64,000 bases of DNA from Paraphysomonas bandaiensis (lineage: Eukaryota; Protista; Chrysophyceae). The stretch lies in assembly GCA_965644295.1 (NCBI GenBank), contig CBFFRP010000133.1:186001-250000 (forward strand), written 5' to 3'. A program made the position numbers and the translations under genes. Below the pieces are notes generated by a model. It made no database searches and was not told the origin of the DNA. It was given only the letters and a program-made list of their open reading frames with translations. Below, one piece after another: positions 498 through 34,015 of this stretch; the first letter of the stretch is position 1, and every line of letters begins with the position of its first letter.

Positions 498-603
498 CTC
501 AAGGAATCTCGTCGCTTGCAGCTCATCATCTCTCTTCCCAGGGAACGAAGTTTTAAATGCAGGGTCCTCAGGAGTTTTATCTGAAAGATGTCCTCCTGCA
601 GAC
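498..603 (-). repeat. Inverted duplicate of two Copia segments (961-1015 and 773-811)
   Basis: 498-552 is the near-exact reverse complement of 961-1015, and 562-603 of 773-811. ORFs 448+ and 901- share the peptide SRNLV(A/T)CSSSSLFPGNEVL. Confidence 0.9.
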
Positions 604-2492: not shown

Positions 2493-2519
2493 TATACAGT
2501 TGTGGTTTACTGTATTATG

Positions 2520-4309: not shown

Positions 4310-4567
4310 TTTCAACTTTAATTGACTCCAGCTTGCTTCAATTAATAGATGAAACTTCCCATCATATTGACACTGGCAAGTAGCTATAAAACAGCATTTT
4401 CTGTTAAAATCCAATTTTTATGATAAAAACTCGAAGATTGGTAGAAGGCAATAATATTTATCTTACACTAGCAAGTGCTTCACTGAATTCCTGATTCTGG
4501 GGGGTAGCAAGCCATCGTCTTGTACCGCATTGCTCTATCACTAACTTTCGGATTCCTTAGGAGGGGC

Positions 4568-4611
4568 ATTCTAACGAAAGAATGGACGTATTCTAACGAA
4601 AGAATGGACGT
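4568..4611. repeat. Exact 22-bp tandem duplication
   Basis: ATTCTAACGAAAGAATGGACGT occurs twice in tandem. Confidence 0.95.
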
Positions 4612-6929: not shown

Positions 6930-7159
6930 GCGCATTAGACTGTTGGTTTGGCACTGTCATGCTACTGCTCCCGTGAATGCCGTAAATAAGCACCCTAATT
7001 ACTTTTAAATTGCTTGGCTCTTGTCGTTTTCTAATGATTGCTGATACATTTGTAGATGTGGCATTACCTGTGTGAAAACGCGCTACCAGTTGACAGTGTT
7101 GTAGGCTTGGTGATCATGTGATCGTAAAACTGGAATATATGCATAGTGATGTAACTATA

Positions 7160-7240
7160 TTGCAACAGTATTGTTGGTCTAGTTAAAAAAGTATTGCAGT
7201 ATTATTATTGATGAGAAACTAGCCAACAATACTATTGCAA
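7160..7240. repeat. Short hairpin (~24-bp arms)
   Basis: TTGCAACAGTATTGTTGGTCTAGT (7160-7183) pairs with ACTAGCCAACAATACTATTGCAA (7218-7240). Confidence 0.85.
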
Positions 7241-8007
7241 GTAGTGAATGACGAATTATTTGATTATTATTATATGCGTGTAAGAGTCAAAACTAATGTA
7301 GCAAAACAATTTAACTAACTACTGCTTACCTCTGATATCCTACTATTTAGCACTACGAAAATTGCTTGTGCGTCACCGCAAGCACTAAGGTACAACCACT
7401 TTTGCTAGTTCACTCAAAGCAAGCACAGTGAGAAATGAGAAAACATATAGTGTTGATATACCTGACATGTGCTGACTTCAGGAATTTTGAGTCCTTAGGT
7501 AGGAAATGTGAGAGCTGCCCACGGACGTGTACCCTCAACTAAGTCGGACTTGCACCTTTCCATGGTGTTCTTGGGGACAAGTACTGGAGATATAACGTGA
7601 GCCGCATATATAGCAGATAATTTTCTGCTCACTCATAGCCGAATGCTTGTATGGTACAAGGAACGTTAATATATGTGTCTTGCGTAGACGTCTTTGGGTC
7701 CCGACGAATAAACACGCACCCGGGAGTGGGCCACTCAAGGGCGTCCGGGTATTGGGCTGCCTGATGTAGAAGTCAAGCAATGGGCCCACCTTAAGGACTC
7801 AAAAATCCTGAAGTTAGCAGGTGTCAGGTATATCAACGTTTTGTTTGCTCACTGCATTGGCTTTGAGTGATAAAGTGAAAGTAGTTGCACCTTTGTGCTT
7901 GCGGTGACGCACAAGAAGATATCAGAATTAAGCACTAGTTAGTTAAATTGTTTTGTTACATTAGTTCTGACTCTTACACTATTGCTAATAATTAGACATT
8001 CACTACT
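7240..8007. mobile_element. Foldback/MITE-like element with 220-260-bp imperfect inverted arms
   Basis: Arm 7240-~7503 is the reverse complement of ~7785-8007. Examples: AGTAGTGAATG/CATTCACTACT, CTTGTGCGTCACCGCAAGCAC/GTGCTTGCGGTGACGCACAAG, GTTGATATACCTGACA/TGTCAGGTATATCAAC. Confidence 0.8.
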
Positions 8008-8160
8008 ACGGACGTGTAGCCCTTCAGTGTCAAGAGGTGTGTTCTAAAATCTAACCAACATGGAATCATGTAAAACGAGAATTTCACAGAGACCTTACCA
8101 CTTCAGACCTATGCCACAATCCGCAATCACACAGAAGTTGCAACCAGAGATTAAGAGTTG

Positions 8161-8183
8161 TAACCCTAACCCTAATCGAATAG
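8161..8183. repeat. Interstitial telomeric (CCCTAA)n motif plus TCGAATAG tag, copy 1
   Basis: TAACCCTAACCCTAATCGAATAG is the exact reverse complement of 49589-49611. Confidence 0.9.
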
Positions 8184-8249
8184 TTTAACACAAATTATTA
8201 CCTACTAAAAACGACGTATAATAGAAGCCAGAAAACTTGCTCCAATTCA

Positions 8250-11200
8250 CTATATCATTATGCTCCCTAAAACAATTTCCGTTGTTCTATTCACCACATC
8301 GTGCATTTCATTTAATGTACTACAAGACTCTACAATAAATATTACGGTCCGATCTCCCAACCTGCGCGCAAGAACCCAAACACCACCTCTTTGGACAGAG
8401 GACACGCGAAGACATGCTTCACGCAGACAACCCGGAGGGGCGCCACTCCCTAAAATATAAGGTTCAGAATAAGGAAAGGAAGTACAAATCCTAATATCAC
8501 TTCAAGTGTACGTAACACAATGTGAAAATGCGAATGCCAGTGGGAAGAACAATGCATAGAATCTACCAATACTCGCAACAGATCGAACCTGTTACGACTG
8601 ACATAATGTCATTAATAGCAGCTACAACCTTCGCGGATAAACACCCTGCAAATGAAAATTTAATATTGCCATGAAAAAAAGTGTACTTCCAAGTATAACG
8701 CACCAGTGACTTGTCCAGCAGCCAAAGGGAATCGCATTCTGCTATGAAATAACTGGGGGAAAATTGTTTGCACAGTTGGGGACAGTGGGGTGGGCCAGGC
8801 ATACTGAGGAGAATGTGTACTTCTGTACACATTAGCCGCCTACAGTTATAAATATTAACTATACTGTCATCATATGTTGTCGAATCGTGAATATCAATTC
8901 CAGACACTCCCAAAAATACTTGTCCATGCTACTACCTTAAACGCCACGTTGCAGTCGTTAGAGTAAATAAACCTGAGGTAAAAGAACCAATGTCATACAT
9001 TTTTCCATATACAAAGCAACATGAGTAGAGATGTAAACTAAATGTATATCATTGTACCACCATTTAAATATCGCAAATGAAAAACCCAATACACTATCGA
9101 CCTGATACAGGGTGATATATTCACAAATACTACATCAACGAGAAATGAACCCTCTCATATAACAATCCAATTATTTACTCACCCAATTCCTTCAGGAACA
9201 TCAGTTGAAGGATAGCTGCGGTGCTTCTGAATGTATGACGACGATGATGTACTTCGAGACAAGCGGCTCTTCACTCCAACTATAAACATCGTACGTTCAT
9301 AATGTACATTACGCAATTGCACATATTGTATATAGGCAACAGAACACTTCATGCTTAGAAGGACAGTAAATATACCTTTTTCGGGAATTGGCATATTGAT
9401 AGCAGCAGTAATACTCTTTTGAAGAGCCACACACATATTTGTCAATCTACAGTGCGGCAATTCGTCGCTAGAATTTAAACCATAACGTCTACTAGAAATC
9501 TCATGGCTAGTTGGCTCATAAGGAAATTCTCCCTCCCAGTTCGGAAACAATACCAGTACCAGAAAGCTATACAAAAGAAACAGTTCGCAATATTCTAGTT
9601 AAACGATAATGACGGGAAATACATCTACAAATTTCAAAACTATGTAGGGTGAATGCAGATGACAATGCTTAAAGAAGCAACAATACCTAGCCTCTCGGTA
9701 GACGAGCGCTCTGCCCGCACACACAAAACTTGATGCATCGTCGTCCATAACATCGGGGTCTGCACAAACACAAGCAGTTAATCTATGAAGATACAGAGCA
9801 ATTGAACCACCTGGATTTACACCATCAAGACAACATCCATTAGAAGTAACAAACAGTGGCGACAATGCGCCAGCCACACCTCTACTGTTGTCATTATTGC
9901 TACAGCAGTCGCTTTCCGTATTGCCAGGAACATGGACGCGAGGACACCATATATTCCTTTCGCCACTGCACATGTATGATAGTACTAATATTGCAGAACA
10001 TAGTAAGCACAATTAGAATTCATATCAAGGCATATATATCTCACTCTCTACTGACACTACACACATCGATTATTCGTCGAATATACAACATACTACTTTC
10101 AGATACAACCGAAAATATATAAAATTTCACACATAATTATTGTAGCTAAATATATATATTTCACCTACGCGTATACAGTAGAAGTCGTAAAAGTGCAATG
10201 TATAGAAATGTCTGATTTTACCTTCACTGCAAGTGGAGCTGCATATAAAAGGCTTCGAATCAAGTTCATCGGCATTGAAAAAGACACTGTCATCTTCATT
10301 GTCATCTAGTATGTCTACAGTCCCCCAGTCCACAGAAACAAAGCCACGCCTTTCGCGGAATTTCTTAGTGATGCTCTGAGCACATGTAAACTAATTCAGA
10401 TGTTTATGTAACCCTAAGCATACATAGAGCTTACAGTCAATTCGATTCTAACACTCACATCTACATGGGCCTGTTTTTTCTTCTGCATATCGCTATTGTT
10501 ATCGGAGGCTCTACGCCTTACACTTGGGAAAGTCCTGTGTATGCAGACATCAATATTCAAACGTGTAAACAAAACCAGGATGAAAGTGATACTGCTTCCA
10601 CAAATGCAACAACTTATATAGCAAAAACGATATCATCTACACTCTTCTGAATTGCGATTTTGTCAAACCTTGATTTTTTTTGCTTTGTATCATCAACTGT
10701 AGGAGAATTGGAGACAGATTTCGTGGGCGGACTTTCACTACGCGCAGTTGCCACCTAAAAAATATATCATATTAAGAGAAGAATAAGTGCATAGCACTCA
10801 AAACCTCGCAATCTCCAATAGTTCTCGATCTGGGAATTAAATCTGCCCCATTGCTAGGTGAGAACAATAGTTCTGATATTTGCGATGCCATATCACGAGT
10901 GGCAGCATGCTCCTAAATCAAAAGCATTTTAAGGATTCTGCCTTATACTATACAATCAGCAATAACGTTATCAACACCATAACCGTGTATATACTACAGC
11001 GCAATATCAGTCTATAAGTTAACACAAATAATCGGAAAAGGCCAACACACAGCACCGATCACATCACAGATGAACAGTCATATATTTAATGATAGTTATC
11101 GATATAAAACTTCAAACTGAAAGTATATATCACAAGAGTACCTGCAACTTGATGAACTCATACAAACACAGCATGTCGCAGTCCATAAGATCATTCCACA

Positions 11201-13296
11201 AAACTTGGCCCTCATGAAGAATAAATGAGCCTGAATACAGTAGATAGCATGAGGTCGAACTGCATCACAATACTGGACGAGGTGATATAACGCACTATGA
11301 ATCTCCATCAACACGACAAGCCCACATACCCAATACGGAGTCACCAGCTGTTGTATTGATAGCCTTTCGAATTCTAGCAACCGCCTGAAAAATACTCAAT
11401 ATTATCACCTCCATTACATTTCTCATACTAACGCATTCCGAATAATATACATTATTGCAACGTATTGCAATTTACTAAATCATTGTCACATGGCCCTAAC
11501 ATAAAATCATGATGGTACTGACGTGAAAGTTGGGGTTTCCGGCAGGAGAGAAGTGCATCCCCCACATAGAATTTATTCCAGAAACCGACATGAACTCTCC
11601 AGTTGATATGTACCATGTCAAAAAGCTCTTCAACAATCGTCTAAGTTCATCAGTTCATCTTACAATAAAAAAAATGCGATAGCGATACGTTAAGCATAGC
11701 GCTCAACAAACAACATATTTTCCAATACTTGTGGCACATTTTAGATAATAACATGACACCTCTCGCATAGTCAATAGTCACTCACCGAACAAGCTTTGGT
11801 GTGTATCTACAAGTTTTGATGTCGCCATTACAAGAATCTTCAGAAATTATATCCCGTAAATATTCTTCCTAAGTGTTAAAAAGCAAATCATTACTGCCAC
11901 AAATATAGAATACAATTGTACGCAACAAGAGTAATATCACGAGTATCAAACAAAAAGTACATCATACAATTTTATTGAAGTTGCGAATACGTAAACTGTA
12001 GCCGGAGTAACGAAAATGTACTCACGTTCTTCTCAATATCTTCCTGGATCTCTTTGTACTTCAGCTCAAGTTCCTAAATACGCAGCAATAATAAGTTTCT
12101 ATCAAAAGTTTCAGAAGGCTAGCCCAAAATAAAATACAAAAACGAAACTGGTGTACCGTACCTCCACAGTCGCCGCACCACTCCTAATCCCTAAATGCTC
12201 ACTGCGCCGCTCAGAATTCATGTCTGACCCGTCTTCAACGGAACTATCGCGATTCTTAAGCACCTGTTTATACATACCCTAAGATACACACTACACGAGT
12301 TGGGAAGTGTACTTGCGAGGTACAAGAATAAAGTACGTCGACCAATCTGATAAAAAACCACAGTGGAGTAGTACATAGGTATGAAACGTACATATATCAA
12401 AACCATATCTATCAAAAACGGCTACCTCTATATCTTGCTCAATTTGAGCGCAGCTTCTGTTGAACTTTCTTATTCTCTTCCGAAGTGTACTCACTTGTTC
12501 GATGGAGTTCCAGCCATTGTTAAGTGATATCATCCTTTCAATAGCACCCATCTGGGAGGCATACACAAGGTACATTTTCTAACAAATTAACACATATATG
12601 TTAAATTTCAAAATCAGAACATCACACTAACAACTTGGCCAATCTTCTACCGTATTGATGCAATACAACGATTCCATACACACTCAATATAACATTTCAC
12701 ATGCAAAGAGAAGTATCGGCCGAATAATTTACCTTAATAGCGTCAACAAGCCCAACTCCACAAGGAGAATGCTTATAGTAGTAAGTAGATGTATCTGTCC
12801 CAATGATCCCGTTTTTGTTCTCTACGGAGACAACGATCCAAATATTCGGTTCACACTCATAAAATCCCCATATATGTTTCTGCGAACAGACATTTAGCCA
12901 CAAAAAAGTTTATACTAATTATGGCTAATGCTATGTGCAAATTCAAACATAACTAACGTAAAGCATAATTCGTGATAGTGCAAAGGATATCACTAATATC
13001 CTCGTAGTGTATCAGCTTCACCTCCATTACGACGAACTCAATCGGGTCTGGACAAAATTTCCCGGAAAACTCCATCAGCCCCTCCACCATAGTCATGCGC
13101 GACAGCTGCATTGCTCTCAGTCAGACATCATTGGCACAAATACAGCAACATTGAGCTGTACCTGCCAGTACAACGGTGTGTCTGAGGGGTGGAAGAAGAG
13201 GATCTTCTCGCCCTGCTCCTCATCTGTTGAGCTCTCATCCACACTACCCATCTGACGGTGAAATATTATCACATTAGATATTCCCGAGTCCACCAT
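8250..13296 (-). CDS. CCZ1: Vacuolar fusion protein CCZ1 (Mon1-Ccz1 Rab7 GEF subunit), many exons
   Basis: Manual splicing gives EKILFFHPSDTPLYWQ|LSRMTMVEGLMEFSGKF, FYECEPNIWIVVSV, GSFILHEGQVLWNDL..DMLCLYEFI, FIYSNDCNVAFK and GVWVLARRLGDRTVIFIVE..IMI*. These parallel the conserved CCZ1 longin blocks in order. Some internal exon boundaries are unresolved. Confidence 0.85.
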
Positions 13297-13682
13297 GCTC
13301 AGAGAGAGGGTGATTGGAAGTAGGACTAGGACTTAAATAATTGTTGTGTGCTACAGTTGTATGCGTTCAACAGTTGATGGCAGCATGTGTATATATGCAT
13401 ACCATGCCATTACCTGGAGGGTGTACATTCACATACACAGCCGTATCTGCTGCATATCATAGTAGAAGATAGCAGTATTCTACTCTGTATTCTGTATTCC
13501 ATAATTTAACAGCAAGGCCCATACATAAGAACACGCGGACATGTACAGCAGCAGTACATGCATGTTGGTGTGTATTTTAGCTGTTAATTCGAAGCAAGTG
13601 TTGAATGTGATGGCATGCCATGATATCAACACAAAGGCGCGTATTCACTCATGGAACAGAAGCAGCTGTCAATATCTGAACA

Positions 13683-16614
13683 ATGAGACTATATAACTAC
13701 CTCTTAGTTCTTTTGAATCTAGCTGTGTTAGGAGTGCTGGTGCATTTGTTCCTATTGAACGCTGGATCAGAGAGCGGTCGAGTGGTGTCAGATGTTATGT
13801 TTTTTAAGGCTCCGGCTATAAGTACATCGGTACCGGTGATCGTTAACACAACCAGAGCACATGAACAGATTAACGTACCTGAACTGAGCAGTCCAGTTGT
13901 TAAATTATTCGCAAATAGCAATAAGGTGTCTGCTGGAGATACAGTTGAGCGGATATATCGGAGTCATGTGCTTCAGACACAGCAGGCTTTTCGGGACCAC
14001 CCGTTTCATAAAATAAACATGACTATTTCACTGGAAGATTATATGGCATATTTAGCTCAGCAGAGTAATTGTGCATCGAAGCCGATATTTTTGACTATGG
14101 CTCGTGTGTCTTCTCAATTGTATGTGTTGATTGGTATCTTAATGTAGCTGTGACATTTGTATCCACATAGGTATTGGCAACTGATCGAAAATTTCTTTTA
14201 TACTATGTTAGTAATTTTATACTATGTGTTAAAGCTTACTTATAGCAATGAATGCAGGAAATATTTCGGTCATCTGGAGTGTGCAGTGATGGTGTGTGTG
14301 TCAGGTTGAAGTCCACTCACCCCATAAGTATGTATAAAATTTGTGACTTAGATCCCGTTTGCGATTTAAAATGCAAGAACCAAGACTTTCCTTGTTATAG
14401 TTTTACTTATGAAAATCCACATGCGCATACCTTTGAGCAGGTATTTTCGTATCGCATACTATAGTAACTGCTTATCGATTGTAGGTAGCTGCCATAAAAC
14501 TTCGGCACGTTGCCTTGGCTCTTCAGAAAAACGTCAGCATTATGCTTTTGGATTTGGATGTAGGGTTTCTTCGAGATCCTTTGGATCTATTTGAAGGGTA
14601 CGCCATGAATTTAACAGTGAAGTTTCAATAATATTTAAGTTTCAGGTTTCTTGAACATTCAGATGTTCAAGTACGTGAAGTTGATGTTTGGTATCATAGA
14701 TGCGATAAATATAACTGTAATTTATGCGCTATTAGGTTAGAACTCAAATGGACATAGGTTGGGCCATGGATAAGCATCAAGGAATGACATGGTTTACTTT
14801 TCCCAGAGCTAATTTTGGACTATTTCTTGTCAAGGGGTGTCCACTCTCTGCATTGGTATGGATGCAACACTATAGTTGAATTAGTCTTAGTCGTGAATGA
14901 TCACAGCTATTTCATCGAGCCTGGAACAAGTATGCGAAATGTAAGGCTACGAAGTTACGTTTATTAAGTAATATGTAGCAGTACCTCCAGAGCATAAGCG
15001 TACTGTAGCAAAAGATCAGAGTGTAATCCAGGGACAACTGTCTTTCGGAAAGTGGAGGTATGTATCATACAGAGTTGCGTAATAATGTGAGCATAATCTG
15101 TTTTAGATATGATTTAAACTTTAGTTATTTCTACCCTGGGTTCCTTCCAGGTAAAATATGCATTCTATTTATTCAGGCTGATCCTCTCTTTGTAGATACC
15201 CACCCGCGCCAAGTAATTTTTACTCCCACACTACTGTTGCACAAAGTAGAGAACTACAACGGTCATGGAATCCGCTTTGAATTAGGTCTGTATTATTGTT
15301 ATGAATGGTGTAATGTGTAATTTTAATTTAGGTGGAGTTGCCGCATTAGAGGAGATAGGGACAGCCGTTGCAGGTTCGTAGAAATGCCTCTATACTCATT
15401 GATAAATATCCTACAGTGCATGCCACGTGCTATGAGAAGACGTCGAAGCTGCATGCTCTTAAGGTTGTTTTTTACGTCTGGTGTTTTTCTCACTTGGTTT
15501 TTGAAGGCTGCGAATGCATTCTGGGCAGATGAGTACTATGCACCGACAAAGAAAACATTGACCAAAGTACTGTGTATATTGGTGTCACTCTTTCGCAGTG
15601 TTTTAACTAATACGGTAATTATAGCCACTGATGTTGCGCACATCCGTACAAGATTTACTTGACGAAGTACGAGCACTGGCTTACGTAGCACTTCGAACTA
15701 ATCGTTCGCTTATTATTCCAAACATACTACTTGGTAGATATTTAGTTTTATCATAAAAATTATGTTAAACATGATGTCAGGGACCGGCTTAGATTTACCT
15801 GGTGGAAAGCGAAGTGGTCATATATTATTTGATTATCGTGCGAATGCAAGAAATGCGAAGGTGTAGAAGTGGTCGTTCTAACTATAGGCTCTAATACTGG
15901 TTCATTGTATAGGCAATGCTGTCATATCCTCAAAAGAAATCAGTACTTTCAAGTTCACACGGGTTGAAGAATATGCCAATGTCTCATGCAGCGCGCTATG
16001 GGTAAGCTATCATTAATAGTCCCATTATATTTAGATATCTATGCAGCAATAATTTGTACTGGCCTGCTTTCCGCGCAATATATTCAACGCTCAATATGCT
16101 AGAGGTTTGTCGATACTTTCATATCATGGTTACAGAATAAGAACATGTAATGCAGATTTTGGAACCTGGGTTCTACTTCAAGATTGAAGAGCAGCTATAT
16201 CTTGATGTTCCTGATCCCGAGATTATACAGTGGACAAAACCTGACCCACCACCTTCAATGAAGAACAGCGATAACAGTAGAGCAAATTACTTGAATTCAC
16301 TTGTTGACACTGTTTCAGCTGTTGATAGCTCACGTATTGTGCTAGATATTGTTGGGCAACAAGACCCCGTACCTGGTGAAGGTAGACCATGGGATATTTA
16401 CCGTTGGGCTAGACACTCCACTAGTTCGTGGGGTGGTGCAGTCGTGAATAAGGATGGATATGTTGCTATGCCACCTTTGCCTCGCAGATTTCAAAACCTC
16501 AATGACGAGTCAACTATACCGTTTTACGAACGTGTACAAACAGGTATTCTCATGTGCGAGAAGTTTTTGCTTCCACCCAATGGAAATAGGTCGTGTTTTA
16601 ATAAATGTAACTAA
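13683..16614 (+). CDS. Type II membrane nucleotide-diphospho-sugar transferase (GT-A, DxD; Nucleotid_trans/GT77-like), >15 short exons
   Basis: N-terminal TM anchor. Spliced exons give IENFFYTM, MLLDLDVGFLRDP (DxD), RANFGLFLV and KDQSVI. Confidence 0.7.
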
Positions 16615-18406: not shown

Positions 18407-18586
18407 AACAGTAGCAGATGTAACCAGCTATGATATATGCTTCACTGCTGATAGCATTTGAACACCTCTATCTGTACGAATCTACTGCTAGATTCAATTC
18501 ACCGTATACCGTAATACCAAAATAACAGCCAAATACGATTAACGAATACATATAAATATACAGTACATGTTGGTATATTGCTGTAT

Positions 18587-18767
18587 ATACATACATACAT
18601 ACATACATACATACATACATACATACATACATACATACATACATACATACATACATACATACATACATACATACATACATACATACATACATACATACAT
18701 ACATACATACATACATACATACATACCTGCACACATGCTGGTGTACATACATACATACATACATACA

Positions 18768-18798
<31 letters not shown>

Positions 18799-18887
18799 GT
18801 ACATACATACATACATGCATACATACATACATACATACATACATACATACATACATACATACATACATACATACATACATACATACA

Positions 18888-18918
<31 letters not shown>

Positions 18919-18971
18919 GTACATACATACATACATACATACATACATACATACATACATACATACATACA

Positions 18972-19003
<32 letters not shown>

Positions 19004-19174
19004 CACATACATACATACATACATACATACATACATACATACATACATACATACATACATACATACATACATACATACATAGGTGCACACATACATACAT
19101 ACATACATACATACATACATACATACATACATACATACATACATAGGTGCACACATGCTGGTGTACATACATAC
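18587..19174. repeat. (TACA)n microsatellite, ~590 bp, interrupted
   Basis: Directly visible. Interruptions recur: TGCACACATGCTGGTGTACATAC at about 18728 and 19148, and ATATGT at about 18795 and 18915. Confidence 0.99.
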
Positions 19175-19253
19175 CAGAACACGAACAGGAGTGGTGTTGA
19201 TCCATCTCATCATCTCCACACTATTCTCTCTGAACTCCCAATTTTCGTAGGGA

Positions 19254-20284
19254 ATGTCAGATAACAGGAGAGCCACTATGGCTCTGTACCGGTCATTTAT
19301 CAAGTTAGCGCATCAGATGAACAGTTCTCGTCCGATGGTCCTGCAGAGCACGCCCCCCTTATCATCCTTGCAGAGATACAGGTACTACGATCCTGTAGTT
19401 CTGAGAACTAGTATTTTAAATGGAATATGCCACGATAACTCGTATGATGCGGACGTATCCCAGTCACCCTTCATAGAGCCCAGCACCGTTAAAGATATCG
19501 TCAGAAATGCTTTCCGTAAACAAGATGCGAGTAGAGATATGAGTCAGGCTCTAACGGCGGGTTACAGTGCCTTTCGAGCGGTGTCAGCAATGCAGACACA
19601 GTCCATAAATACGAGTGTTACTGAAAGTACTTTTCAGGATATATCTGTGCGAATTATCTGTTCTGCTATATATGTCGGCCCTATCCGAGCTGTGAACAGC
19701 AATTTGATGCACCATTATGCATATCGTATACAAATAGAAAACATAAGCAAAGAGGATACAAAATTTCAAGTGTTAGGTACGTGGAGTATAGACTTGGATA
19801 TAAATGGGTTTGACTGATTAATGTATCTATTGCTCCTACTTAAATACTAGTTAATGTTCCTACAAAGATAATTTGCTTGTTAATTCCACTGTAGGAAGAC
19901 ATTGGGTTTTCACCAATGCTAGTGGAACTGTAGAAATGCAAGTTCCAAAATTTTCGGAAGGTGTTATTGGTGAAACGCCGGTTATAGAGCTTAGCAAGGG
20001 GTTTGAGTATATGAGTCAGACGACAGTGACTACTGAGGTACGTGGTGCTGTACAATATAGACATACCAATCCAATGAAAAGTATGTATTTTCTCTGCGGG
20101 CGCTTTTTGAACCTTTTGTGTTGAAGGTGGGTGGTATGTATGGGTCACTGCTACTGCTGGACACGGCCACTAATACACAGTTCGAAGCAAGAATAGAACG
20201 GTATTAAAGAATGTTTGATACCTTCATTTTCATATTTTATAACCATTGCACAGGTGCGCCTTAACCCCGATTCAATTGTCATAA
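19254..20284 (+). CDS. ApaG (DUF525) domain protein with LYR-like N-terminus (4 exons)
   Basis: YAYRIQIEN..FQVL|GRHWVFTNASG..EGVIGETPVI..GFEYMSQT is the ApaG signature. The N-terminus has ALYRSFIKLA..VRNAFR. Confidence 0.85.
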
Positions 20285-21314: not shown

Positions 21315-22349
21315 ATGGAATTCACAGATTCCTCAGCGACCATTCGTGTGATGGCCAAGTGGAGAGGGAGCGTCATCTGTCTGCAGGATATCGACATGTC
21401 CTCCACATCAGTGAGAGATCTTAAGGTGATGCTGGAGGAGCAGACATCAGTATCGATCCATCGCATGAGGGTTCTTGGTCTGGATACTAAAGCCACAGAT
21501 GATAAACTGTTATCGCAATATTCGAATAAAGTGAAGAGAGGTCAGCTGCACGTGTCTGTTATGGGCACTCCAGATAACGAGATTCAGGAGTTTGAAAGCA
21601 TTGGCGAAGGAGTTCAAGAGTCAGTGTTGAATGACTTTGGTCATAACTTTACCCCAGCGACAGATGAGTGGCACAAGCTCAAATATTTCACAGATAGTCT
21701 AGAGATAAATTTCATCAACGAGCCGCGAGCTGGAAAAAAACTATTAGTCCTCGATCTTGACCACACCATATTGGACTTTTCATCGAAAGGCTCGATGGAT
21801 CCAATTAAGATGAAGCGCCCATATATGGATTTTTTTCTTGAAAAGGCCTATGAGCACTTTGATATTGCTGTATGGTCACAGACTCACTGGCGTTGGGTAG
21901 AGATCAAGCTGATTGAGCTGGATATCATCAACAACCCTAGATACAAACTCTGTTTTGTGTTAGATAAAGCTAGCATGTTTCGCTGCGGCCCCAAAAAGCG
22001 TTACATAAAGCCATTGCACATAATATGGTCTAAGTTTCCTTGTCTGTGGGGAAGGCATAATACCGTTCACGTGGACGATCTTGAGCGGAACTTCGCGATG
22101 AACCCTGAAAGTGGGATATTAGTCACTGCCTTTTATCGACCTGATAGAGAGAGGAAGAAAGGAGAAGCTCGTGAGAAGACATCTGATATGGAACTGCTTC
22201 CACTGTCGTCTTATTTAAGTGAAGTTGGGGCTATGGATGACCTCAGCGCTGTCTGTCACAAAAATTGGAAGGAGAGAGCCGATGTTCTCATTCGGGGAAC
22301 TGATTCGTCCTTTCGGGAAACTGATAGTAAACCCTCGTCAATGTCTTAA
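21315..22349 (+). CDS. UBLCP1: Ubiquitin-like domain-containing CTD phosphatase
   Basis: An N-terminal UBL (KWRG..VRDLKVMLEEQTSV) is followed by a HAD/FCP1 domain: GKKLLVLDLDHT, MKRPY, IAVWSQT, KPLHIIW, NTVHVDDLERNFAMNP. Intronless. Confidence 0.93.
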   Translation: MEFTDSSATIRVMAKWRGSVICLQDIDMSSTSVRDLKVMLEEQTSVSIHRMRVLGLDTKATDDKLLSQYSNKVKRGQLHVSVMGTPDNEIQEFESIGEGVQESVLNDFGHNFTPATDEWHKLKYFTDSLEINFINEPRAGKKLLVLDLDHTILDFSSKGSMDPIKMKRPYMDFFLEKAYEHFDIAVWSQTHWRWVEIKLIELDIINNPRYKLCFVLDKASMFRCGPKKRYIKPLHIIWSKFPCLWGRHNTVHVDDLERNFAMNPESGILVTAFYRPDRERKKGEAREKTSDMELLPLSSYLSEVGAMDDLSAVCHKNWKERADVLIRGTDSSFRETDSKPSSMS

Positions 22350-23621: not shown

Positions 23622-26600
23622 CTAGGTACAGCCTTCATCACTACGAGAGCCAGAGACTTCCAAAAACGAAAAGGGTGTGGCATCGGCGTGGTGCGGAGAT
23701 GATTTGGCACTTGTAGTGGCAGACTTGCTATCGTTATGCACAATACTAATGGAATCGGACTCGGAAAGCAATGCGGACATCAGCTCTTCTAAATCAATTT
23801 CACCATCACTATTCATATCTGTCTTAGCTATGATATCATCAACTTCCGTCCACGACACTTCTATCCCTAGGTCGAACAGAGATAGCATCAATTCGTTTTT
23901 GTCAATCGCTCCGGACTTATCTTTATCCATATAAAGAAAGAATTCCTTTGCTTGCATTGCAAAATTCGCCTTGAGATCCTCTGCTTCCTGGTGGGTGTCA
24001 ACTGAAATATCAGCCTTCGAGGACGTGTTTTCAAGGATTGACGGTATCACTGACGGTGCAATATTTTCAGGAATTCCCCAACCTATATTTATGTAATGTT
24101 TATAATAAATTATAAATTATATGCATCAATAACCGTACTTTTCGATTTTCGCCTTATCGCAGTCAAATCATGTCGCGAAAGGCCCAAGTCACTAGATCTT
24201 CTTCTCAGTCTACTTCTGTCATAAGCCATTAGGGCATTCGACCAGAATTTCTTCGTGGGGGCTATGTTAGCTGCATTAGCACGGCCGGTCAAAGATTCAT
24301 CGGACGCATTAGATATAACCGACATGAAACGTCGTTTGCGCCGCAGTCCAGGTTCTTCCAGTTCATCATCCCTACCATCTTCATTGGCATCTTCACATGC
24401 GTCTAACACATCCTCTGCAACGAGGCCCGCAATGCCGAATAAATTTCTTATCGAATCTCCATTGTATTGCCCTTCCACATCATCGGATGGTACCACGTCG
24501 CGTATATATATGTGCGGCCCCGTTTCCGTGAATAGCGATAGTAAAAACCGATATCTCTCTGAGAACGGCATCACACGAAAGAGCTTCCAAATATCCTCCT
24601 GATCGTATGAGAAAACTTCAGTTATTTGACAAGCCACTGCGTTATCGATTCTCATGCCAGTTTTTGTCATTAAACACATTTCCCCGAAATGATACCCTTC
24701 CGTGTGCTTTCCATATATCACACTGTGCTTTCGCTCTAAAATCTTTTTGGCTACTTTTCCCGCCTCGTCAAACACTGTGGGATCATTGGCTAATGTGACA
24801 TCTACCACTCCAGAGACGACGAAGAAAACACATCGACCGGTATCGCACTCAGAATACACTTCCACGTGTGGTAATAGCATCTGCATTTAGATAAATACGG
24901 TTTACAAATACGCATGTGGTAGAATGTCGTACAACACACACCTGTGACTTCAAAGCCAGAGCTATCCGTCCACGTAACGATGGGCGGCAATGGTCTACCA
25001 CTGGTATTGTACGTATTGCCCGTCGGTTCAGTTCCAGAGCCACCTCCGCTGCCATGGGGGCAGATAAACTATTGAGAAACGAACTCTTGTTATGGTCTAC
25101 TCGACGTTCTTTCCTCCACATTGTGTGGTACGTAGTCAATATCGCCGCGCCAATATCAGAATTCAGTCCACGATACCGAATGTAGTTCTCAACACTGCGA
25201 AGCTTTTCTTTAAACAGCACGGTTCCGCATTTATCGTTGTTTTCTAACAAAGATATGATTTGACCTGCAGTGTTTGCACCTAAACATCCCGCGACAATCG
25301 ATAAGAGGACCATGCCGACCATCTCCAAGTCTGTGTATGGAGCAATATCACCTACAAGTGTTACACACCAGGAGAATTAAAATAACGAATACATCAAAAT
25401 CAACACAGTCGAACTCACCATAACCCACAGATGACATCACTACCGCAATAAAATACATAGCTCGATGGTAGCAGTCCCACATTGAGACACTACACACGTC
25501 GTGCTCACCCGTTTCTTCGTTGTACGTTGCGTGTCCATCGGCAATAACCCACGTGAGTCGGTATGTGCTCTGGTAACGATGCAACAAAAAGAATAAGCAA
25601 GCTAGCCAATGATTGACAAAAACATAAAATCCTAAACACTCGACCACCATAATCGTGCATTGTTGCCAGGTCAACCCCATATTAATCAAATGCTTTTGGA
25701 CCTGATATGTATAAATTCACATTATGACAAAAAAGACAAATCGGCAACAATACCTGATTTATTCTATTGAAGAAATTTTTGAGGCGAAAAAGATGGACCA
25801 TTCGAAGCGCAAATATGTGGCGAAACTGTAAGCTGGGAAGTAGCACAAATATTTCTATAGGAATGCTCCCACATATATCCCATATCATATCCCACTTCGA
25901 CTTATACAACTTGTCGGCTGCACGGTAAGAACTTGAATCATCTAGAATGTGCACATGAAACACTTGAACTCGAATGATTAGCTCGATAATGCACAGTGTG
26001 TCGACAGTAAAGTCAACAGCCATGAAATTCTTGTAGAAGTCCACATACTTCCCAAATATAAAAGACACTTCAAAGGGGATAGTGAATGCATAGTAAAACA
26101 TCAGCAATAAGCCACATATATCGAGGACAATCTTCGCAGTTCCCCGGGGGTGTGCTAGCTTCTTCCGCCACGTTTTCTCTGGTTCTTCAACGACAGGACC
26201 AAGTATACGGGACAATTTAGATGCTCCACGACTTATAGATGCCAAATTAGCCGCAACAGCAGAATTACGTCTCTCGTTGCCTTTCTGCAATCTGGTGCGG
26301 AAGTTAATAAATTAGTGTGAGGTAAATGTCACTTCTTGCAAGCAGAAATACCTCGCCAGTGCGAGTTCAGATGCATCTGCACTGTAGTTACAATCTCGTA
26401 ATTCAGAATCGAAGTCATCTTTACGCAGCACGTAGCATACACACACCGTAGCAGCTCGTATGTTGGCCGTCCGTCTGCTTCGATACACCAAACCTGTCTC
26501 CCCAAAAAAACCTCCCTCTTGAAGCTTTGCAAACACTGTCGCTCCATCGTTGCTTAAGACCTATAGATAGCCATATAACTAAACTGTTTAAAACGAGCTG

Positions 26601-29600
26601 ATGTGCACTGCTGTGTACATAAATGCCACGAGGGAACAAAATACTCTATGCGAATATTAAAAACACCATTCTAACCTCAACACTCCCTCTGTCAATGAAA
26701 TACATCTCCTGTCCAAGATCTCCAAAAGAAATAATAATGTCTCCGGTAAAAAACATTTCCTGCTCTAATTTCATACACAAGTTCTTCAGAACTTCATCAG
26801 AGCAGAAGTCGAAAAAGGGACATTGTTTAAAGAATTTCATCTTTGTGTGCTCGCTAGTAGCCACCTGTAGTATATACATCGACGTACAGTTAGCTTTCTA
26901 CCTATATATAATGGTGCATACAATATATTACCTTCAGTGAATAAGGAAGCTCTGAAAATATAGCATTCTGTTTCAGAATAAGTTGTCCCGCATCGGTAAT
27001 TAAGAACTTCATGTAATTCGATACCTATTGCCACACAAGAATTACTTAGAACAGCACAAAGTATATAATGACTACATTATGACGAACATAGGAATTCGCC
27101 TCTACTTCCGAACTATCGTATCATCCATACCTTTTGAATAGTTTCAGGTTTCACTTTATTCACCCGCAAGTGTTGCTTTAAAATTTCCATTTGAGTTACA
27201 ATAGACGATCGATCTTCATCTAACAATGTGACCAGAGAAATAATGCTCCCTACTATCATTGCATTGATAGTGATACCGAAAAACATGGCACCGTAAACAT
27301 AACTCGTCTCATTCATATTCATGGGATACATATCTCCAACCACGTATAGCATCATAGTTGGTATAGCCCATTCCACGGATCGTATGTATCGAGAAAACTG
27401 TGATCCCCCGTCCTGCGGGAGCTTACCCATATAAATGAGAAACTGCACCCAAGTGTGGCGGAATTCACAGGCATTTCCATACATAGCATTCGGTTCATTT
27501 TCGCAGTCATGAGGATGCACCTGAATAGAACACGAAGTAATGATGAGATGACAAAATAAATAGGTGAAATTAACCTTGGAGAATAAATACAAGCCACAAC
27601 CAAGCCAATGACCCACAAGCAAACAGCAGCAAAGAACCTACGAAAAATAATAAGAACATCCACACATTCGTATCGACATGTGTTCACCTGGGCAAGTCTC
27701 ATTGTTGTAAATGAAATCTTAACCATTTCTAAAATCGATTCTGCTTGAGAATGTAATATTTCCCCCTTCAGTATCAAAAAAACCTTTGGGATCCTTAGTA
27801 TTGCCATGATTTTCAATAAACGACTTGTTGAGGCATCGATAAAAAATATCAACAGAAGTTCGTACGGAAACCGGGCCAATACATCGCCCCAAAAGTCAGT
27901 CTTATAATACATATCACGAATAATTGCAGTGTCCACTACATGCCTGCCTCCTATAGACTTTCTGAAGTATGTCCAGTTCAAGTACATGTCTAACAGGAGA
28001 ACTAAGTCGAACGCGTAGTCCAGGAAGTACAGAGAGGGCACAATATCTAATGCCAACCGCAATGGAATCATCGTCAAATTATAAACGAGAATCGCAAGCA
28101 GCATACAGTCCCAAAACATTCGACTCTTTGACCCTACTTCTAACTCCTTGCACCAGTCAAATGGTATTTTCTCAGACGCAAAATCTGTAAACATCAACAT
28201 ATTTCTGCTCCAAAACATACTCCGGAAATCAATGCTTCCAAGTGCACGTACTTTACTACTACCAGAGCTCCGATCAAGTGGACTATCACTGCCAGAGTCA
28301 CCTTGTTGTAATATAGTTTTGCGATTTTTTTTAATTTTTTCATTTAACACTTTTTGAATTCCAGAAACAACGGCCTCACTTTCAGTAGGAAACGAATCTA
28401 ATACCTGCAGTTAAAAAGTTATAATATCGTGACAAAATAGCCTGTGACAACGAAATTGTACTATAAAAACAAATAATATTATCGCTTATAATGAGGTAAC
28501 ATGACTGGAAAGTAATATCAATACCTTCTGGAATGATTCCTTCGAAAGAATGTAAGTATCCGAATAGTCACGAGCATAAGCCGAGGCTGATCGCACACCA
28601 ACCTATAGAGGCATCCATCTTCACAAATGGATAATATATTGAGGGTGTTTTATACCTTCAATAGGCAGCTCTCCCCTATGTAGTCACCGTTGACAAGAGA
28701 TGCATATACCACTTTGCGATCGGGAGATGTGACGACAATGTTGCCACTCTCAATAACAAACATTTCTTTGCCGTGCTCCCCTGCACGAACCACTTCATCT
28801 CCATCTAAGAAGAGTCTGTGATGTAAGAGCCCCAAGATCATCTCCAGCATAGGCTCAATACAGTTAGAAAAGAAAGGGATTTTTACTAACACAGACCCCG
28901 CGACAAACTTTACCACAGCCTGACGCAGTGGTTGCGGCAAACCGGCCAGTACTTCTGCTTCATTTACACCACTGGTTTTGGAAAACCTGTACTGGTAAGA
29001 GTACATAATTTTTTGCTCCATCTCAGTTGGAATTCTTTTGAATTTCATAAGACGGCCGACAGTGGCCATGTGTTCTTCAAATCGTCGCTTATCAAGGTTG
29101 TAGTTGGCCATCAATGATGCTATACTGCCGAGCAATGCATTGATGGTTTGGCACCCGCATATCAAAATCACGCAGCATAAAATCATCTCCACTAGGTTCG
29201 AGCTCGGAAGATCGGCGGTACCAGCAGATGACATCCCATTAATTGCCCTGATAGACAGAAACAAGAATCACGGATAATTCAGGTTATGGTAAGAAAAGAA
29301 CAAACACACATTACATACAAACTATACAACATTAGCCTTTTACCTACCAATATATTCCGCGTCTGTAAGGACTAAATCCATACATGCCATCATATTCCAT
29401 ATAAAGGAAATCTGATTCACTGTCCTGTATTTTCCAATTGATATCCGCCCCAAAAAGTTTGGTACTGGTGTCAGCAGTCAGTTGCCAAAGACACCCAACC
29501 CAATGGCAGAGCTGAGGACAAAAAAAGACAATTAAATACATGTAGTATCAAGTATGCATAGTAATCAGGTTCCAATACAGCATTGACTTACCAGAAATAA

Positions 29601-32314
29601 GGCAGAGTATAGATTGATAAATCGCCTAGATGTGAACGATAGCGTGTACCCCGAGGATGCCGAGAAAAACTTCTCGGCTCGGTCTGAATAATCATTCAAG
29701 CGTCCAAAATGAAGAATTTTAGATAACCGCAAAATAGGGAGATATTGGGCACCGAACCCAATAGCCAATATATCAAATGGAAAATGCCGCATCACTTCAA
29801 TGAAAACGTTATTCCTAGTGACGAAGTTCTTGAAGATATCTCGGGGTTGTACATATAAGACACTTTCATATAAATAAGAAAACGTACAGCATCTGAAAAA
29901 TAAATCTACACCAAGAGCAAAATCGATCAGAAAGCTCCAATACAAGCACACTTGATATGTGGAAAAGAAATGCGGGTTAAGTGTATCAGCGAGGAGGATA
30001 GGAATAGTGACCCAATAAAACGTCAAAGCCACAAACACGAATAAGTCCCACATATTACGAAAAGATGACGATGGTTTCATCATATCACCCCATACCGAAC
30101 GAACTTCAACCTGAAGTGCCCCTACAGACCATATCATTCTCACGGTTATCACACATTAAGATTTAACAATATACAAGCTCTAATATATCAATATAATTCA
30201 CACCATTGAAAACAGAAGAACCATAAAATAGCAATATACAAGTGGATTTATGTTCTAGATATCGTAACAGCCCCACACTCACACACAAGTAATTTGTAAA
30301 AATTACCTGTCCCCATATGAGACATATGGGACACCGCAGACGACATCCGCAGAAACCTTTGAGAAGGTTTATTCGATATCAAACCACCAGTACAGGCCGA
30401 CGCGAACTCCTCATCGGAAAGGTACATTCGGCATGTGCGTCTGAACTTCGACCGGCTCAGATACAAGATCTCACACACGCAAGCTCCGGATGAAAGAGTC
30501 GATGAGAAGACAAACTGCTGCATGAGAGCTTGGACTCCATATGCCTCACCTTGCCGCATTGCTTGAGATATTACGAAGTGAGTGCTCTTAGAATCATTGC
30601 CCTGACTTCTTTCATATATTTTAGATTCGCTTTGAGGACGATCTTGCTCTAGCTCAAACGATGCATTCGGGGATCCCATTTGCGGAGGACTGGCCGAATC
30701 AACACAATCATTCTGGTTGCTTGAGTAAACGAATGCCTCACCCCTGTGAAAAAGAAAGACGTCAATTCGCAATATTCACACCTAAGCATTCCTAAGCAAC
30801 TAAACACCTAAGTTGAAAAGAGATATATAGAGTTGCGCGGGAAAACGCTCTAGGTTTCCACTGACCTGGAAACAATATACATTCCACGAGCTTTCGTTCC
30901 AGCAGCCACAATTACATCACTAGGAGAGTACATGAAAATTTCTATGTCTTCAGCCAGCGCATTCAGAATCGCTGTGCGGAATGACCTCAAGAGTTTGATA
31001 TTCTTGAGGTAATCACGAACAGTGGCTTGCTTGATCTTACATACAATGTTATGCGGTAGTTCAACCATCAGCTGTATCACAAAAAATTAGTACCAAGCAG
31101 AATACGTACAACGACACAAAATAGTACCCGAGATTCATCCAGTCCATTTAATATTTTCCACTGATGATAATAGAATGACTTGATTCGGTCCGTGAGCTCG
31201 GTAGGTAATGATCGAAACTGAGCATATTTATTGAGATTTGATATCTGTTCGGTATATTTGGTTCTAGCAGAGTCGAAAACATTAAAGAGCAAGATCAAGT
31301 TACTTATTGCAAGGATTGCCAATACGAGAGCGAGATAGAAGTAGAACATACAAAAACTCGTCTCAGTATCAGAGATTGGAACCACATCACCAAACCCAAC
31401 AGTTTGCTATTTATAATATCAGGGGTAGAGACATTTATTCGCATTGTACTCACCTCTGTTACGACAGACCAGTACAAGGACCGTATATATCGATAATATA
31501 AAGGTTTTGTGAAACGGATATCTCCAGCAGGGCCAACTTCTGCAATCCCATCATTAGTCATCCAGGTAGCTGTGACCCCTCTATTGACCATTAGATCCAA
31601 CGCTAAGGCGTGAAATGCACAAGCGGCGACATGAGCCAGCACAATCATAAATAATGTGATTGCCAATACTCGATGAGCCGAAGCACCGAGTAAAATGTTA
31701 TTCTTTTCTAAAAACATAATTATTTTCTCCCAGTACTTTTTTAAGTAGACTATACGTAGCAGGCGCATAGCACGTAGATAGTAGTAATATCTGTAGCCGG
31801 CAAAGAACGCCGCGACTTCGAATGGAAACAACATCAGCACGTCCAATGTAAAGTATAGTCCTTTTCGACTACTAATATCTCGCCATATATTTCCTTTTGA
31901 CAAAATATCAATCGATGTATTATCATCATCCGCCATATTTTGAGTTTTTTCATACAATTTGACAACTGTCTTATACGCGGACACTGTGTCCTCTCGTTGA
32001 CTGTCCTCGGGACAAACTCTGTTGAGGGGCGTACGATACGAAAGGCCACGCATTGCGCCTGCAGATCGGAATATTTCTTTCACAGAGCGCTTGATTCTCG
32101 ATAGCCTTACGTTCCAAAATAAATCCACTAGGAAGAATATGTCGACCGCATAGTCCAGAAATAAAGCAATCCAGTGGCCCGAATGATACGCAACATGCGT
32201 TTGAAAGCCGAATCGGAATGCGATGGAACATATGTAATAAATAGTAAAAAACAGTCGACACACTTCCAGCAGCGGTATCGCATATGATGACGTCATTGTG
32301 TCGAACATAGTCAT
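23622..32314 (-). CDS. Four-repeat (6TM-pore-CNBD)x4 cyclic-nucleotide-domain K+-type channel (tetraKCNG/CNGK-like) with C-terminal EF-hand pair
   Basis: Four S1-S6/C-linker/CNBD modules. The inter-repeat junctions splice in frame through GT-AG introns. Pores read TVGFGD, SAGTAD, LYVVGD and SVGYGD. EF loops are DKDKSGAIDKNE and DMNSDGEIDLEE. Confidence 0.88.
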
Positions 32315-32879
32315 GTACTGGGAGGTAATATCAAACTACCTGTTCGCTATATAAATAAGACCGGGGTTAGCTGCCATCGACAGAGGAAGATACTTATATC
32401 CAATCTATAATTGGTATGTTAGGGTCCAGGTATACTGTGAGGAGTAGCATCACCTGAGAGCTGTCATGATATAGTGATGTGCCGCATCGTAACTGTTAAT
32501 ATCATGTACATGCATGTATATGTCAGCAGAAATCATTCCACTACACCTACACACGTATGGTATACACGCACTATACAGCGTATACAGTCGACTCACACTG
32601 CAATGCAAAACGATCCTGTATATACACGAATTCCCTACTAGATACGACCCTTTTCTACACTTTCATCAAACGAATCTAGAATTGTATTTTCGTGCTTTTT
32701 TCTCTAAAATCTCCTATTTTCCATCTATGAAAACTACGTCCTACTGCCTGTAGAGCACGGTAGTACTGATGGTCATCAATACACTCATATGTCCAGCATG
32801 ACTTTGCTGTGCAGGTAGCAGTGCGGCATAGTGAACAGAGAGCATCAGACATCATCTACTACACACCTTATCCTCAACA

Positions 32880-34015
32880 ATGCCTACATTTGATCGTGAT
32901 CTCATTGAGTCGATCGAGAGGTGTCTTCTCTTTTTCGGAGAGATCAGCGGCACGGACACAGATGATAGAATATACGACAATCTTACTGATATGTGGGATT
33001 TTGAGCTTGGCAATAATTCCACTGGATCAACTTGGTATTCGAAGGCATATGACTACTGGGAGAGTGAAGAGAATTGTCCAGTTACTGATGACGGTGTGTT
33101 AGGTGGATATGGACATGTTACGGATGCCGATGTCAAGGACTCCAATGCTTTCTTGGATGAGATATTAGCATCCAGTAATCTCAAATCTTTTGAAAAAGTT
33201 GCAGGTAAGCAAAACTAGCAGCGTCATGTGTAATTTATATTTGGGATATTTTTGCTTCAATGTAATGTACTGTTTGTGATCCAGATTGCGGAGCGGGAAT
33301 CGGTCGTGTCAGCAAGCACTTACTGTTGCCTCGGTGCGCCAATGTCGACTTAGTTGAACAAAGTCCCCGGCTTTTGCAAGCATCAGCAGAATATATAGGA
33401 CCGGACAGTAGTCGTACTAGCTGCATCTGTACTAACCTTCGAGTAAGTTCTGATTCGCACGATGTTTTATAATTTCATTTTAATCTCAGGACTTTACACC
33501 GGAACCTGATACATATGATCTGATATGGGTGCAATGGGTTGTAGGCCATCTACATGATGAGGACTTCATATTATTTTTCCGAAATTGTGCCCGCGGTCTT
33601 AAGCCCAATGGCGTAATTGTATTGAAAGACAACTGTGCCGATGACTGGACATTTGTGGTTGACAAGACCGACAGCAGCGTATCCAGGTGCGTATGAGATT
33701 CCGTATAAATTGGTTTTATATCAGTCGTATGAAAATGGTAGTGTGTTTGCCAAGTGTTATATTTGTTTTTTCAGTATCATGGTTGTGACTTGTTAATTTT
33801 CACCACTTGCTTCTATTCATTTCTTCATGTTGTGATTTTTGTGAAACTGCTGCCGCTTATATATGTGTGCATGCAGGTCATCGGAGTATATGAAAATATT
33901 GTTTGACTTCGCCGGTCTCAAGATCGCCTTAGCGAAGAAGCAGACCGATTTTCCAACTGAACTTTCTTCGGTTTACATGTTTGCGCTTGTTCCCAATGAT
34001 ACCGGTCATAAGTAA
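32880..34015 (+). CDS. NTMT1: Alpha-N-terminal protein methyltransferase 1 (4 exons)
   Basis: WYSKAYDYW..TDDGVLGGYG, A|DCGAGIGRV, YDLIWVQWVVGHL, LKPNGVIVLKDN, DSSVSR, QTDFPTEL..VYMFAL. Confidence 0.93.

Follow-up and report, generated by a model that had tools for sequence, protein, structure and literature searches.

The four-repeat channel gene and its product

The window analysed here is a stretch of 64,000 nucleotides (nt) from Paraphysomonas bandaiensis (contig CBFFRP010000133.1, positions 186,001 to 250,000 of the forward strand), within which all positions given below are counted. On its minus strand, at 23622–32314, lies a gene for a channel protein with four repeats (R1 to R4), each consisting of six transmembrane segments (6TM; S1–S6) with a pore loop, a C-linker and a domain for cyclic-nucleotide binding (CNBD). 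The coding sequence runs from the ATG at 32314 to the stop codon at 23624–23622 and comprises 19 exons encoding 2,413 amino acids (aa). It was delimited by spliced transcript contigs, splice-site placement and the open frame. The exons are located at 32314–31454, 31406–31128, 31071–30866, 30743–30307, 30121–29592, 29511–29348, 29247–28656 (exons 1–7), 28602–28525, 28404–27688, 27637–27575, 27520–27131, 27024–26932, 26864–26676 (exons 8–13), 26560–26352, 26291–25754, 25701–25419, 25351–24942, 24880–24139 and 24082–23622 (exons 14–19). The 18 introns measure 47–185 nt and are bounded by GT..AG throughout. The region holds many short minus-strand open reading frames whose frame alternates. An earlier sequence-only reading had proposed that separate minus-strand open reading frames splice in frame into one protein of roughly 2,300–2,500 aa; this was borne out, and its coordinates proved exact.

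Four public transcriptome-like runs were compared with positions 25420–31419 of the window. Single contigs of 8,859, 7,931 and 6,664 nt from runs X8–X10 span this whole region with 14 introns spliced out, each skipped segment having CT..AC at its ends when read on the plus strand and hence GT..AG on the minus strand. The same splice joints were found in shorter, separate contigs of run X12, which originates from a different study. A fifteenth intron (31407–31453) is supported by a loose contig end at 31408. Among the three introns that are predicted only, 25352–25418 and 24881–24941 result in a gap-free alignment with the orthologues; the third is the last intron of the gene, 24083–24138. The introns in the linkers between R1 and R2 (30122–30306, minus strand) and between R3 and R4 (26292–26351, minus strand) are absent from the transcript contigs and are spliced in frame; the R2–R3 linker is contained in exon 28404–27688. 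The frame is open through every joint, all three inter-repeat linkers included. A frame of 2,413 codons maintained without a stop over 18 introns cannot be due to chance, and what the locus contains is a single gene, expressed and rich in introns.

Consensus-based guesses at the splice sites (an intron of 38 nt at 31109/31071, a joint at 30282/30121 and one long intron between R2 and R3) were contradicted by the transcript contigs. These also supplied the small exons 28602–28525, 27637–27575 and 27024–26932, which the guessed model had omitted. Window and transcript contigs differ at six single bases (25821, 25858, 26123, 28327, 28889 and 29925). All six differences are carried by X8–X10, which are labelled as another organism or strain, and five of them by X12 (organism A), which does not cover 29925. 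Four are synonymous and two are conservative (R1760H, I1748L).

The four repeats align with each other over S1–S6, pore helix, filter, C-linker and CNBD, at pairwise identities of 20–25%. All are encoded on the minus strand. R1 (aa 1–590; 30320–32314) combines S1–S6 and the canonical filter TVGFGD (aa 289–294; 31386–31403) with a degenerate CNBD. R2 (aa 600–1075; 28327–30107) possesses the deviant filter SAGTAD (aa 833–838; 29211–29228), in which Thr replaces the aromatic residue and Ala the second Gly, and a canonical CNBD (GES..RSA). R3 (aa 1125–1610; 26270–28179) is deviant in another manner, with the filter LYVVGD (aa 1367–1372; 27332–27349), where Leu stands for Thr and Val for the first Gly; its CNBD (GET..RRTA) is canonical. 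R4 (aa 1640–2150; 24470–26182) returns to a canonical filter, SVGYGD (aa 1873–1878; 25347–25431), interrupted after GY by the predicted intron 25352–25418, and has an atypical CNBD. The sequence-only reading had given the four filter strings in exactly this form. Measured against T-V-G-Y-G, the aromatic residue is missing from R2 along with the second glycine, and the threonine from R3 along with the first. R2 retains the first glycine, R3 the second, and the aspartate following the filter is present in all four repeats. In the ring order R1-R2-R3-R4 the two canonical strands (R4, R1) are neighbours, as are the two deviant ones (R2, R3).

R1 is further set apart by two inserts that are missing from R2, R3 and R4, namely a loop of ~60 aa after S2 (about 31960–32080; aa ~80–140) and a Ser/Gln/Asp-rich stretch of ~45 aa in the beta-roll of its CNBD (30560–30700; aa ~455–510). 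The phosphate-binding Arg of the R1 CNBD is lost in every family member. The GE...R[ST]A cassette is retained in the CNBDs of R2 and R3. In the R4 CNBD the Arg is present, followed by I-D in place of T/S-A, and this x-[DE] peculiarity is found family-wide. Judged by sequence comparison, the repeats with deviant filters (R2, R3) are those with the best cyclic-nucleotide-binding sites. Each S4 contains only 3–4 basic residues.

Pfam searches with pieces of the window recognised Ion_trans or Ion_trans_2 in R1, R3 and R4 and cNMP_binding in R2, R3 and R4. The voltage-sensor part of R2 and the CNBD of R1 remain below Pfam recognition here; both align with the other repeats. Four instances each of Ion_trans and cNMP_binding, together with an EF-hand, had been anticipated; the EF-hand was found and the other two domains scored only three times each. 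The four 6TM-pore-CNBD repeats in one chain are nevertheless confirmed by the alignment of all repeats and by the orthologues P0002, P0003 and P0004, in which four Ion_trans stretches each were scored. The EF-hands form a C-terminal pair (aa 2296–2370; 23754–23978, minus strand; Pfam EF-hand_1/7, E = 3e-10, two stretches). Its loops, DKDKSGAIDKNE and DMNSDGEIDLEE at aa 2313–2324 and 2349–2360, both fit the canonical 12-residue Ca2+-binding pattern D-x-[DN]-x-[DS]-G-x-I-D-x-x-E. The pair is kept in the orthologues P0003 and P0178–P0181 and also in that on metagenome contig L001.

The nearest relatives of solved structure are SthK and LliK, followed by CNGA, TAX-4 and HCN, and the match covers pore, C-linker and CNBD. 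The R2 exon matches SthK residues 199–391 with E = 1.5e-26, and R3 of P0003 matches LliK with E = 9e-35. By these matches the protein is classed as a single-chain pseudo-tetrameric member of the CNBD-channel superfamily (SthK, CNG, HCN, KCNH).

Relatives, conserved pore loops and origin

Since a word search is blind to proteins more than 1.75 times as long as the query and the claim turns on orthologues, an exhaustive, profile-free search was carried out with the exon that encodes R2 from the pore to the CNBD. It returned 6,169 matches, dozens of which are proteins of 2,000–2,900 aa with four matched stretches. BLAST over the full length showed collinearity for P0002 and P0003 (41–43% identity) and for P0007 and P0009 (~32%); P0178–P0185, obtained in a later word search, are likewise collinear over their full length (41–46%). 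Single-repeat matches close to R2 (P0034, P0035, P0046 and others) were considered as separate channels and discarded, as they nest in the R2 clade and represent fragments of four-repeat genes. Members of the subclade to which the window protein belongs all come from metagenomes or Logan assemblies and are unnamed or automatically labelled ‘CRP-like cAMP-binding protein’. Genomic orthologues on the metagenome contigs L001, L002 and L003 are 50–69% identical. The genome that contains the window (62.6 Mb) holds two more paralogues of the subclade, L004 (C126:81160–88491, plus strand) and L005 (C217:195442–202916, minus strand). More distant CNBD-channel loci of the same genome are situated on C386 and C146.

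At least 12 collinear relatives (41–69% identical, the two paralogues included) keep an R3 filter of the form LY[VT]VGD together with a deviant R2. Every subclade member examined, the genomic orthologues L001 and L003 among them, shows QTVG[FY]GD in R1, SVGYGD in R4 and LYVVGD or LYTVGD in R3. R2 conforms to [ST][AST]G[VTSA][ACG]D and occurs as TSGVAD, TSGSCD, TTGVCD, TTGTAD, SAGTAD and TAGAGD. None of these has an aromatic residue, and all retain the first glycine and the aspartate; at the position of the second glycine they have Ala or Cys, apart from TAGAGD, which keeps the glycine. The latter motif belongs to the paralogue on C217 (R1 TVGYGD, R3 LYTVGD); the one on C126 has TSGVAD in R2 and LYVVGD in R3. 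Because synonymous sites would be saturated (the nearest protein from another species is at most 69% identical), conservation percentiles and the six strain differences were used to assess constraint. In 25-residue windows over ten full-length members, which are ~50% identical overall, the mean pairwise identity of the pore loops is 0.81 (R1), 0.73 (R2), 0.81 (R3) and 0.80 (R4), placing them at percentiles 98, 88, 98 and 97 of all windows, respectively. The filter deviations of R2 and R3 are accordingly conserved in the orthologues and do not reflect decay of this one copy, a point on which the sequence-only reading had made its case depend.

The subclade is part of a larger group, referred to here as branch A, that comprises stramenopile four-repeat CNBD channels of diatoms, Chrysophaeum, Cantina and marine metagenomes. 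The window protein is collinear with these over its full length, and each of its repeats falls into a position-specific clade. In the larger part of the branch R1 reads T[TV]GFGD, R2 TVGYGD and R4 [ST]VGYGD, and R3 is invariantly NWA[IL]PTLVVVVIGD (NWALPTLVVVVIGD). Members are found in Proboscia (MMETSP0174), Thalassiosira profunda, T. exigua, a Thalassiosira sp. and Cyclotella cryptica and, outside the diatoms, in the pelagophyte Chrysophaeum taylorii and the bigyran Cantina marsupialis; every one of them carries an annotation such as ‘hypothetical protein’. VVVIGD is the R3 filter across this diatom, pelagophyte and Cantina branch. The R3 loop of the window protein, EWAIPTMMLYVVGD, follows the branch-A pattern N/E-W-A-[IL]-P-T ... 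x-V-x-G-D, a non-canonical loop behind a conserved pore helix. From these alignments the third pore loop of branch A is never a canonical K+ filter, and the window subclade is also deviant in the second. As the subclade deviates in R2 as well as in R3, TxG[YF]GD strands are supplied by R4 and R1 only.

Other four-repeat branches have VVCFGD, VDCFGD or LVGSKE in R3 and TLGQGD or LGYYD in R1; they include P0015 from the basal stramenopile Platysulcus tardus and, from oomycetes, P0103 (Lagenidium giganteum, DAZ97230.1) and P0120 (Albugo candida, CCI10172.1). Unannotated four-repeat relatives in related protists, which had been surmised from the window alone, do therefore exist in diatoms, a pelagophyte, Cantina, oomycetes and metagenomes. 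In the literature searched, neither the four-repeat channels of stramenopiles nor their deviant pore loops were found to be described, and the family receives no description in a survey of the Ca2+ channels of diatoms from 2024 (PMC11085791). The stramenopile four-repeat CNBD channels are an undescribed, widespread family. As a side observation, repeats 1–3 of P0115 (2,262 aa) group with repeats 2–4 of P0077, P0093, P0132 and P0133, which belong to another four-repeat branch, and its fourth repeat with R1 of the window family. This leaves two readings of P0115, a circularly permuted channel and a chimeric assembly.

A per-repeat maximum-likelihood tree was calculated from 156 repeat sequences by a quick method, with support from the Shimodaira–Hasegawa-like approximate likelihood-ratio test (SH-aLRT). 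No choanoflagellate or fungal BeCNG1 sequence is known to be among the taxa. All four animal CNGK-type repeats form one clade (support 100) beside single-repeat channels, and away from it the repeats of stramenopiles are sorted into clades by position. The R3 and R4 repeats of branch A are single clades at 100, and its R1 and R2 repeats at 93 and 90 in a reduced tree of 51 sequences, which agrees with the full one. Branch-A R3 joins R3 of oomycetes and Platysulcus (97), R2 joins R2 (94) and R1 joins R1 weakly (80); a sister relation of branch-A R4 to the oomycete/Platysulcus R4 clade was not resolved. The R1 set joins the R3 set and the R2 set joins the R4 set, as would follow from duplication in two rounds. 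An approximately unbiased (AU) test rejected a joint clade of stramenopile and CNGK R3 (difference in log-likelihood 93.7, p = 2.1e-5). Because of the separate clades and the AU rejection, the four-repeat design is regarded as independent of CNGK; the layout is therefore convergent with that of animal CNGK, and the protein is not a CNGK orthologue. The kinship with the CNGK lineage that the four-repeat layout had brought to mind was thus not found, the repeats clustering by position with stramenopile channels.

The channel gene is bounded at both ends by plus-strand neighbours. Upstream and divergent, a gene interrupted by short introns encodes an N-terminal methyltransferase of the NTM1 type (Methyltransf_PK) at 32835–33700; downstream and convergent, a NIF/FCP-type phosphatase is encoded at 21315–22349. 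The ~520 bp between the channel ATG and the methyltransferase offer room for a promoter and too little for more coding exons, and no further upstream coding exons of the channel were found there. The orthologue on L001 also begins ~12 residues before S1, matching the short N-terminus. On this marine metagenome scaffold the orthologue (~6955–15969, plus strand) adjoins a dynein heavy-chain gene (1–6484, minus strand; DHC_N1, DHC_N2, AAA). No evidence for a flagellar role was found; this neighbour, which does not recur in the window, is the sole hint. Several overlapping open reading frames of 227–254 aa on both strands of one 0.8-kb stretch (18468–19303) may be a repeat or low-complexity sequence, and an Rfam scan of the window gave no match.

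Proposed mechanism and alternative readings

According to the model we propose, the four repeats would enclose one pore, which cyclic nucleotide bound at the intact sites of R2 and/or R3 would open and on which the EF-hand pair would confer Ca2+ feedback. With the second glycine missing from R2 and the first from R3, this pore would be unable to build the four-fold cage of carbonyls that K+ channels have. Strict K+ selectivity appears unlikely because two strands would be unable to adopt the canonical filter backbone, and a weakly selective cation pore seems somewhat the more probable outcome from the filter sequences. An altered selectivity akin to that of the DEKA and EEEE rings may reasonably be inferred by analogy. 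More tentatively, and with rather less than even odds, stramenopiles, diatoms among them, may have independently derived from K-type CNBD subunits a 4 x 6TM channel that is asymmetric of necessity and whose pore has been retuned away from K+ and towards Na+ or Ca2+ by conserved glycine-less strands (R3 family-wide, R2 in the window clade).

We assign a probability of about 0.8 to the overall reading that the locus is one expressed gene and encodes a single-chain asymmetric CNBD channel of a stramenopile family independent of CNGK. Several points weigh against it. The last intron falls in a variable linker and is a prediction. The X10 contig reaches ~1.5 kb past the ATG into the neighbour's territory, which indicates that contigs may bridge genes, and contig evidence alone is no proof of one mRNA molecule; the claim of a single mRNA is based on contig continuity, the unbroken frame and the full-length orthologues together. 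The trees have SH-aLRT support only, with some long branches, and the group submitted to the AU test was named after the tree had been seen. Gating and selectivity of all family members are inferred. Lastly, the Trk/Ktr/HKT transporters select K+ with four unequal single-glycine loops, and a loss of K+ selectivity is to that extent not certain. Contigs able to bridge neighbours might also mean that the long frame is an artefact of the model, behind which stand between two and four genes side by side, each with one or two repeats, or else a copy in decay. We consider this barely credible in view of 2,413 codons without a stop, of in-frame spliced introns in two of the three inter-repeat linkers with the third linker inside one exon, of more than 12 full-length collinear orthologues from independent assemblies, and of strain differences that are mostly synonymous. 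Descent from a four-repeat ancestor shared with the sperm CNGK/tetraKCNG of animals, followed by drift of the filters, would make the protein a true orthologue and would agree with the common overall layout of four 6TM-CNBD repeats per chain. This is very improbable as well, given that the CNGK repeats form one clade neighbouring single-repeat channels with the stramenopile clades elsewhere, that the AU test speaks against a joint R3 clade (p = 2e-5) and that BLAST against CNGK-type proteins is not collinear.

As to the pore itself, an asymmetric filter might still select K+, as in Trk/Ktr/HKT, if the carbonyls of two canonical strands and one retained glycine per deviant strand suffice; the channel would then hyperpolarise the cell upon a rise in cyclic nucleotide like CNGK. 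The intact TVGFGD of R1 and SVGYGD of R4, the first Gly kept in R2 and the second in R3, the aspartate after all four filters and the well-conserved pore helices are in its favour. To our knowledge, however, all characterised K+-selective 6TM and two-transmembrane (2TM) P-loop channels keep G-x-G in four strands. Val at the position of the first Gly in R3 is, moreover, incompatible with the left-handed backbone conformation required there. GYG or GFG is also the hallmark of CNGK (Fechner 2015, PMC4749565). We therefore regard persisting K+ selectivity as unlikely, albeit as an explanation to be reckoned with. Alternatively, the central pore might be non-conducting, the protein serving as a cyclic-nucleotide/Ca2+ sensor or conducting through a voltage-sensor domain, as has been reported for HCNL1 (PMC7306766). 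Two non-canonical filter strands out of four and the few S4 charges would agree with this; the pore helices, deviant filters and S6 are among the best-conserved parts, which indicates a working pore and renders a silent one improbable.

The filters of this family put the rule of four-fold symmetry in K+ filters to the test, with three-plus-one and two-plus-two mixtures of canonical and glycine-less strands under strong constraint, and provide natural material for determining how many canonical strands selectivity needs. If the retuning towards Na+/Ca2+ is true, it would represent a second, independent transition of the Nav/Cav kind, under dual control by cyclic nucleotide (R2, R3) and Ca2+ (EF-hands). 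The family is a large, expressed and unannotated one in ecologically dominant marine protists and could connect cyclic-nucleotide and Ca2+ signalling with the membrane potential.

Comparison with known systems

CNGK is defined by a layout of four repeats whose pore carries GYG or GFG (Fechner 2015, PMC4749565). The K+ channel known as CNGK/tetraKCNG is gated by cGMP; it is present in the sperm of sea urchins, ascidians and fish and occurs in choanoflagellates, too; sea-urchin ApCNGK is gated by its third CNBD alone (PMC4749565). CNGK and the window protein are both single chains of four 6TM-pore-C-linker-CNBD repeats in which not every CNBD is functional. R2 and R3 both look competent in the window protein. 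The CNGK-type proteins of Anneissia and Branchiostoma show GYGD or GFGD in all four repeats, whereas the window protein deviates in R2 and R3; CNGK repeats are 29–37% identical among themselves, compared to 20–25% here. The C-terminal EF-hand pair is an addition of the window subclade. On the basis of these filters, retention of a K+ selectivity like that of CNGK would not be expected.

CNBD channels with four repeats have been reported from animals and choanoflagellates only; tandems of two repeats were recorded for oomycetes and dinoflagellates, and no tandems for diatoms, brown algae and other ochrophytes or for labyrinthulomycetes (Pozdnyakov 2020, PMC7576140). The present family, with its diatom members, runs counter to that generalisation. 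Those tandems resemble it in being CNBD channels of the SAR lineage (stramenopiles, alveolates, Rhizaria) with covalently linked, specialised repeats; they have two repeats and deviant filters are not described for them, while the window protein has four. The grouping of R1 with R3 and of R2 with R4 fits a two-repeat intermediate. As for the published two-repeat proteins of oomycetes, they may belong to a family of their own or result from incomplete gene models.

Among the channels of known structure, SthK and LliK (PDB 6CJQ, 5V4S), CNGA, TAX-4 and HCN are nearest in sequence over pore, C-linker and CNBD, and the module of 6TM, C-linker and CNBD is presumably of the same non-swapped type. They differ in that separate subunits assemble, as homotetramers or as 3:1 heterotetramers, and in that the four filters are equal or nearly so. 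Unequal strands within a chain are also known from the K+ transporters Trk/Ktr/HKT, in which four unequal P-loops per chain each have a reduced filter motif. These loops are set in membrane-pore-membrane (MPM) units of the 2TM type without voltage-sensor domains or CNBD, and the fold context is unrelated.

The Nav/Cav/NALCN channels share with the window protein the 4 x 6TM chain, position-specialised repeats and an asymmetric selectivity filter. Not homologous to it at family level, they have neither C-linker nor CNBD, and single side chains arranged in a ring (DEKA, EEEE, EEKE) serve them as filter in place of K-type strands. The window protein is placed outside that lineage by its best solved relatives, which are CNBD channels, and by the C-linker and CNBD in each repeat. 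CNGK repeats have been considered nearly identical and only the Nav/Cav/NALCN lineage to have become asymmetric (Fux 2018, PMC6259924), a generalisation of positional asymmetry to which the stramenopile family is a counterexample. Its interest lies mainly in the combination of a K+ filter signature whose loss is conserved and specific to position with a convergent origin of the four-repeat layout.

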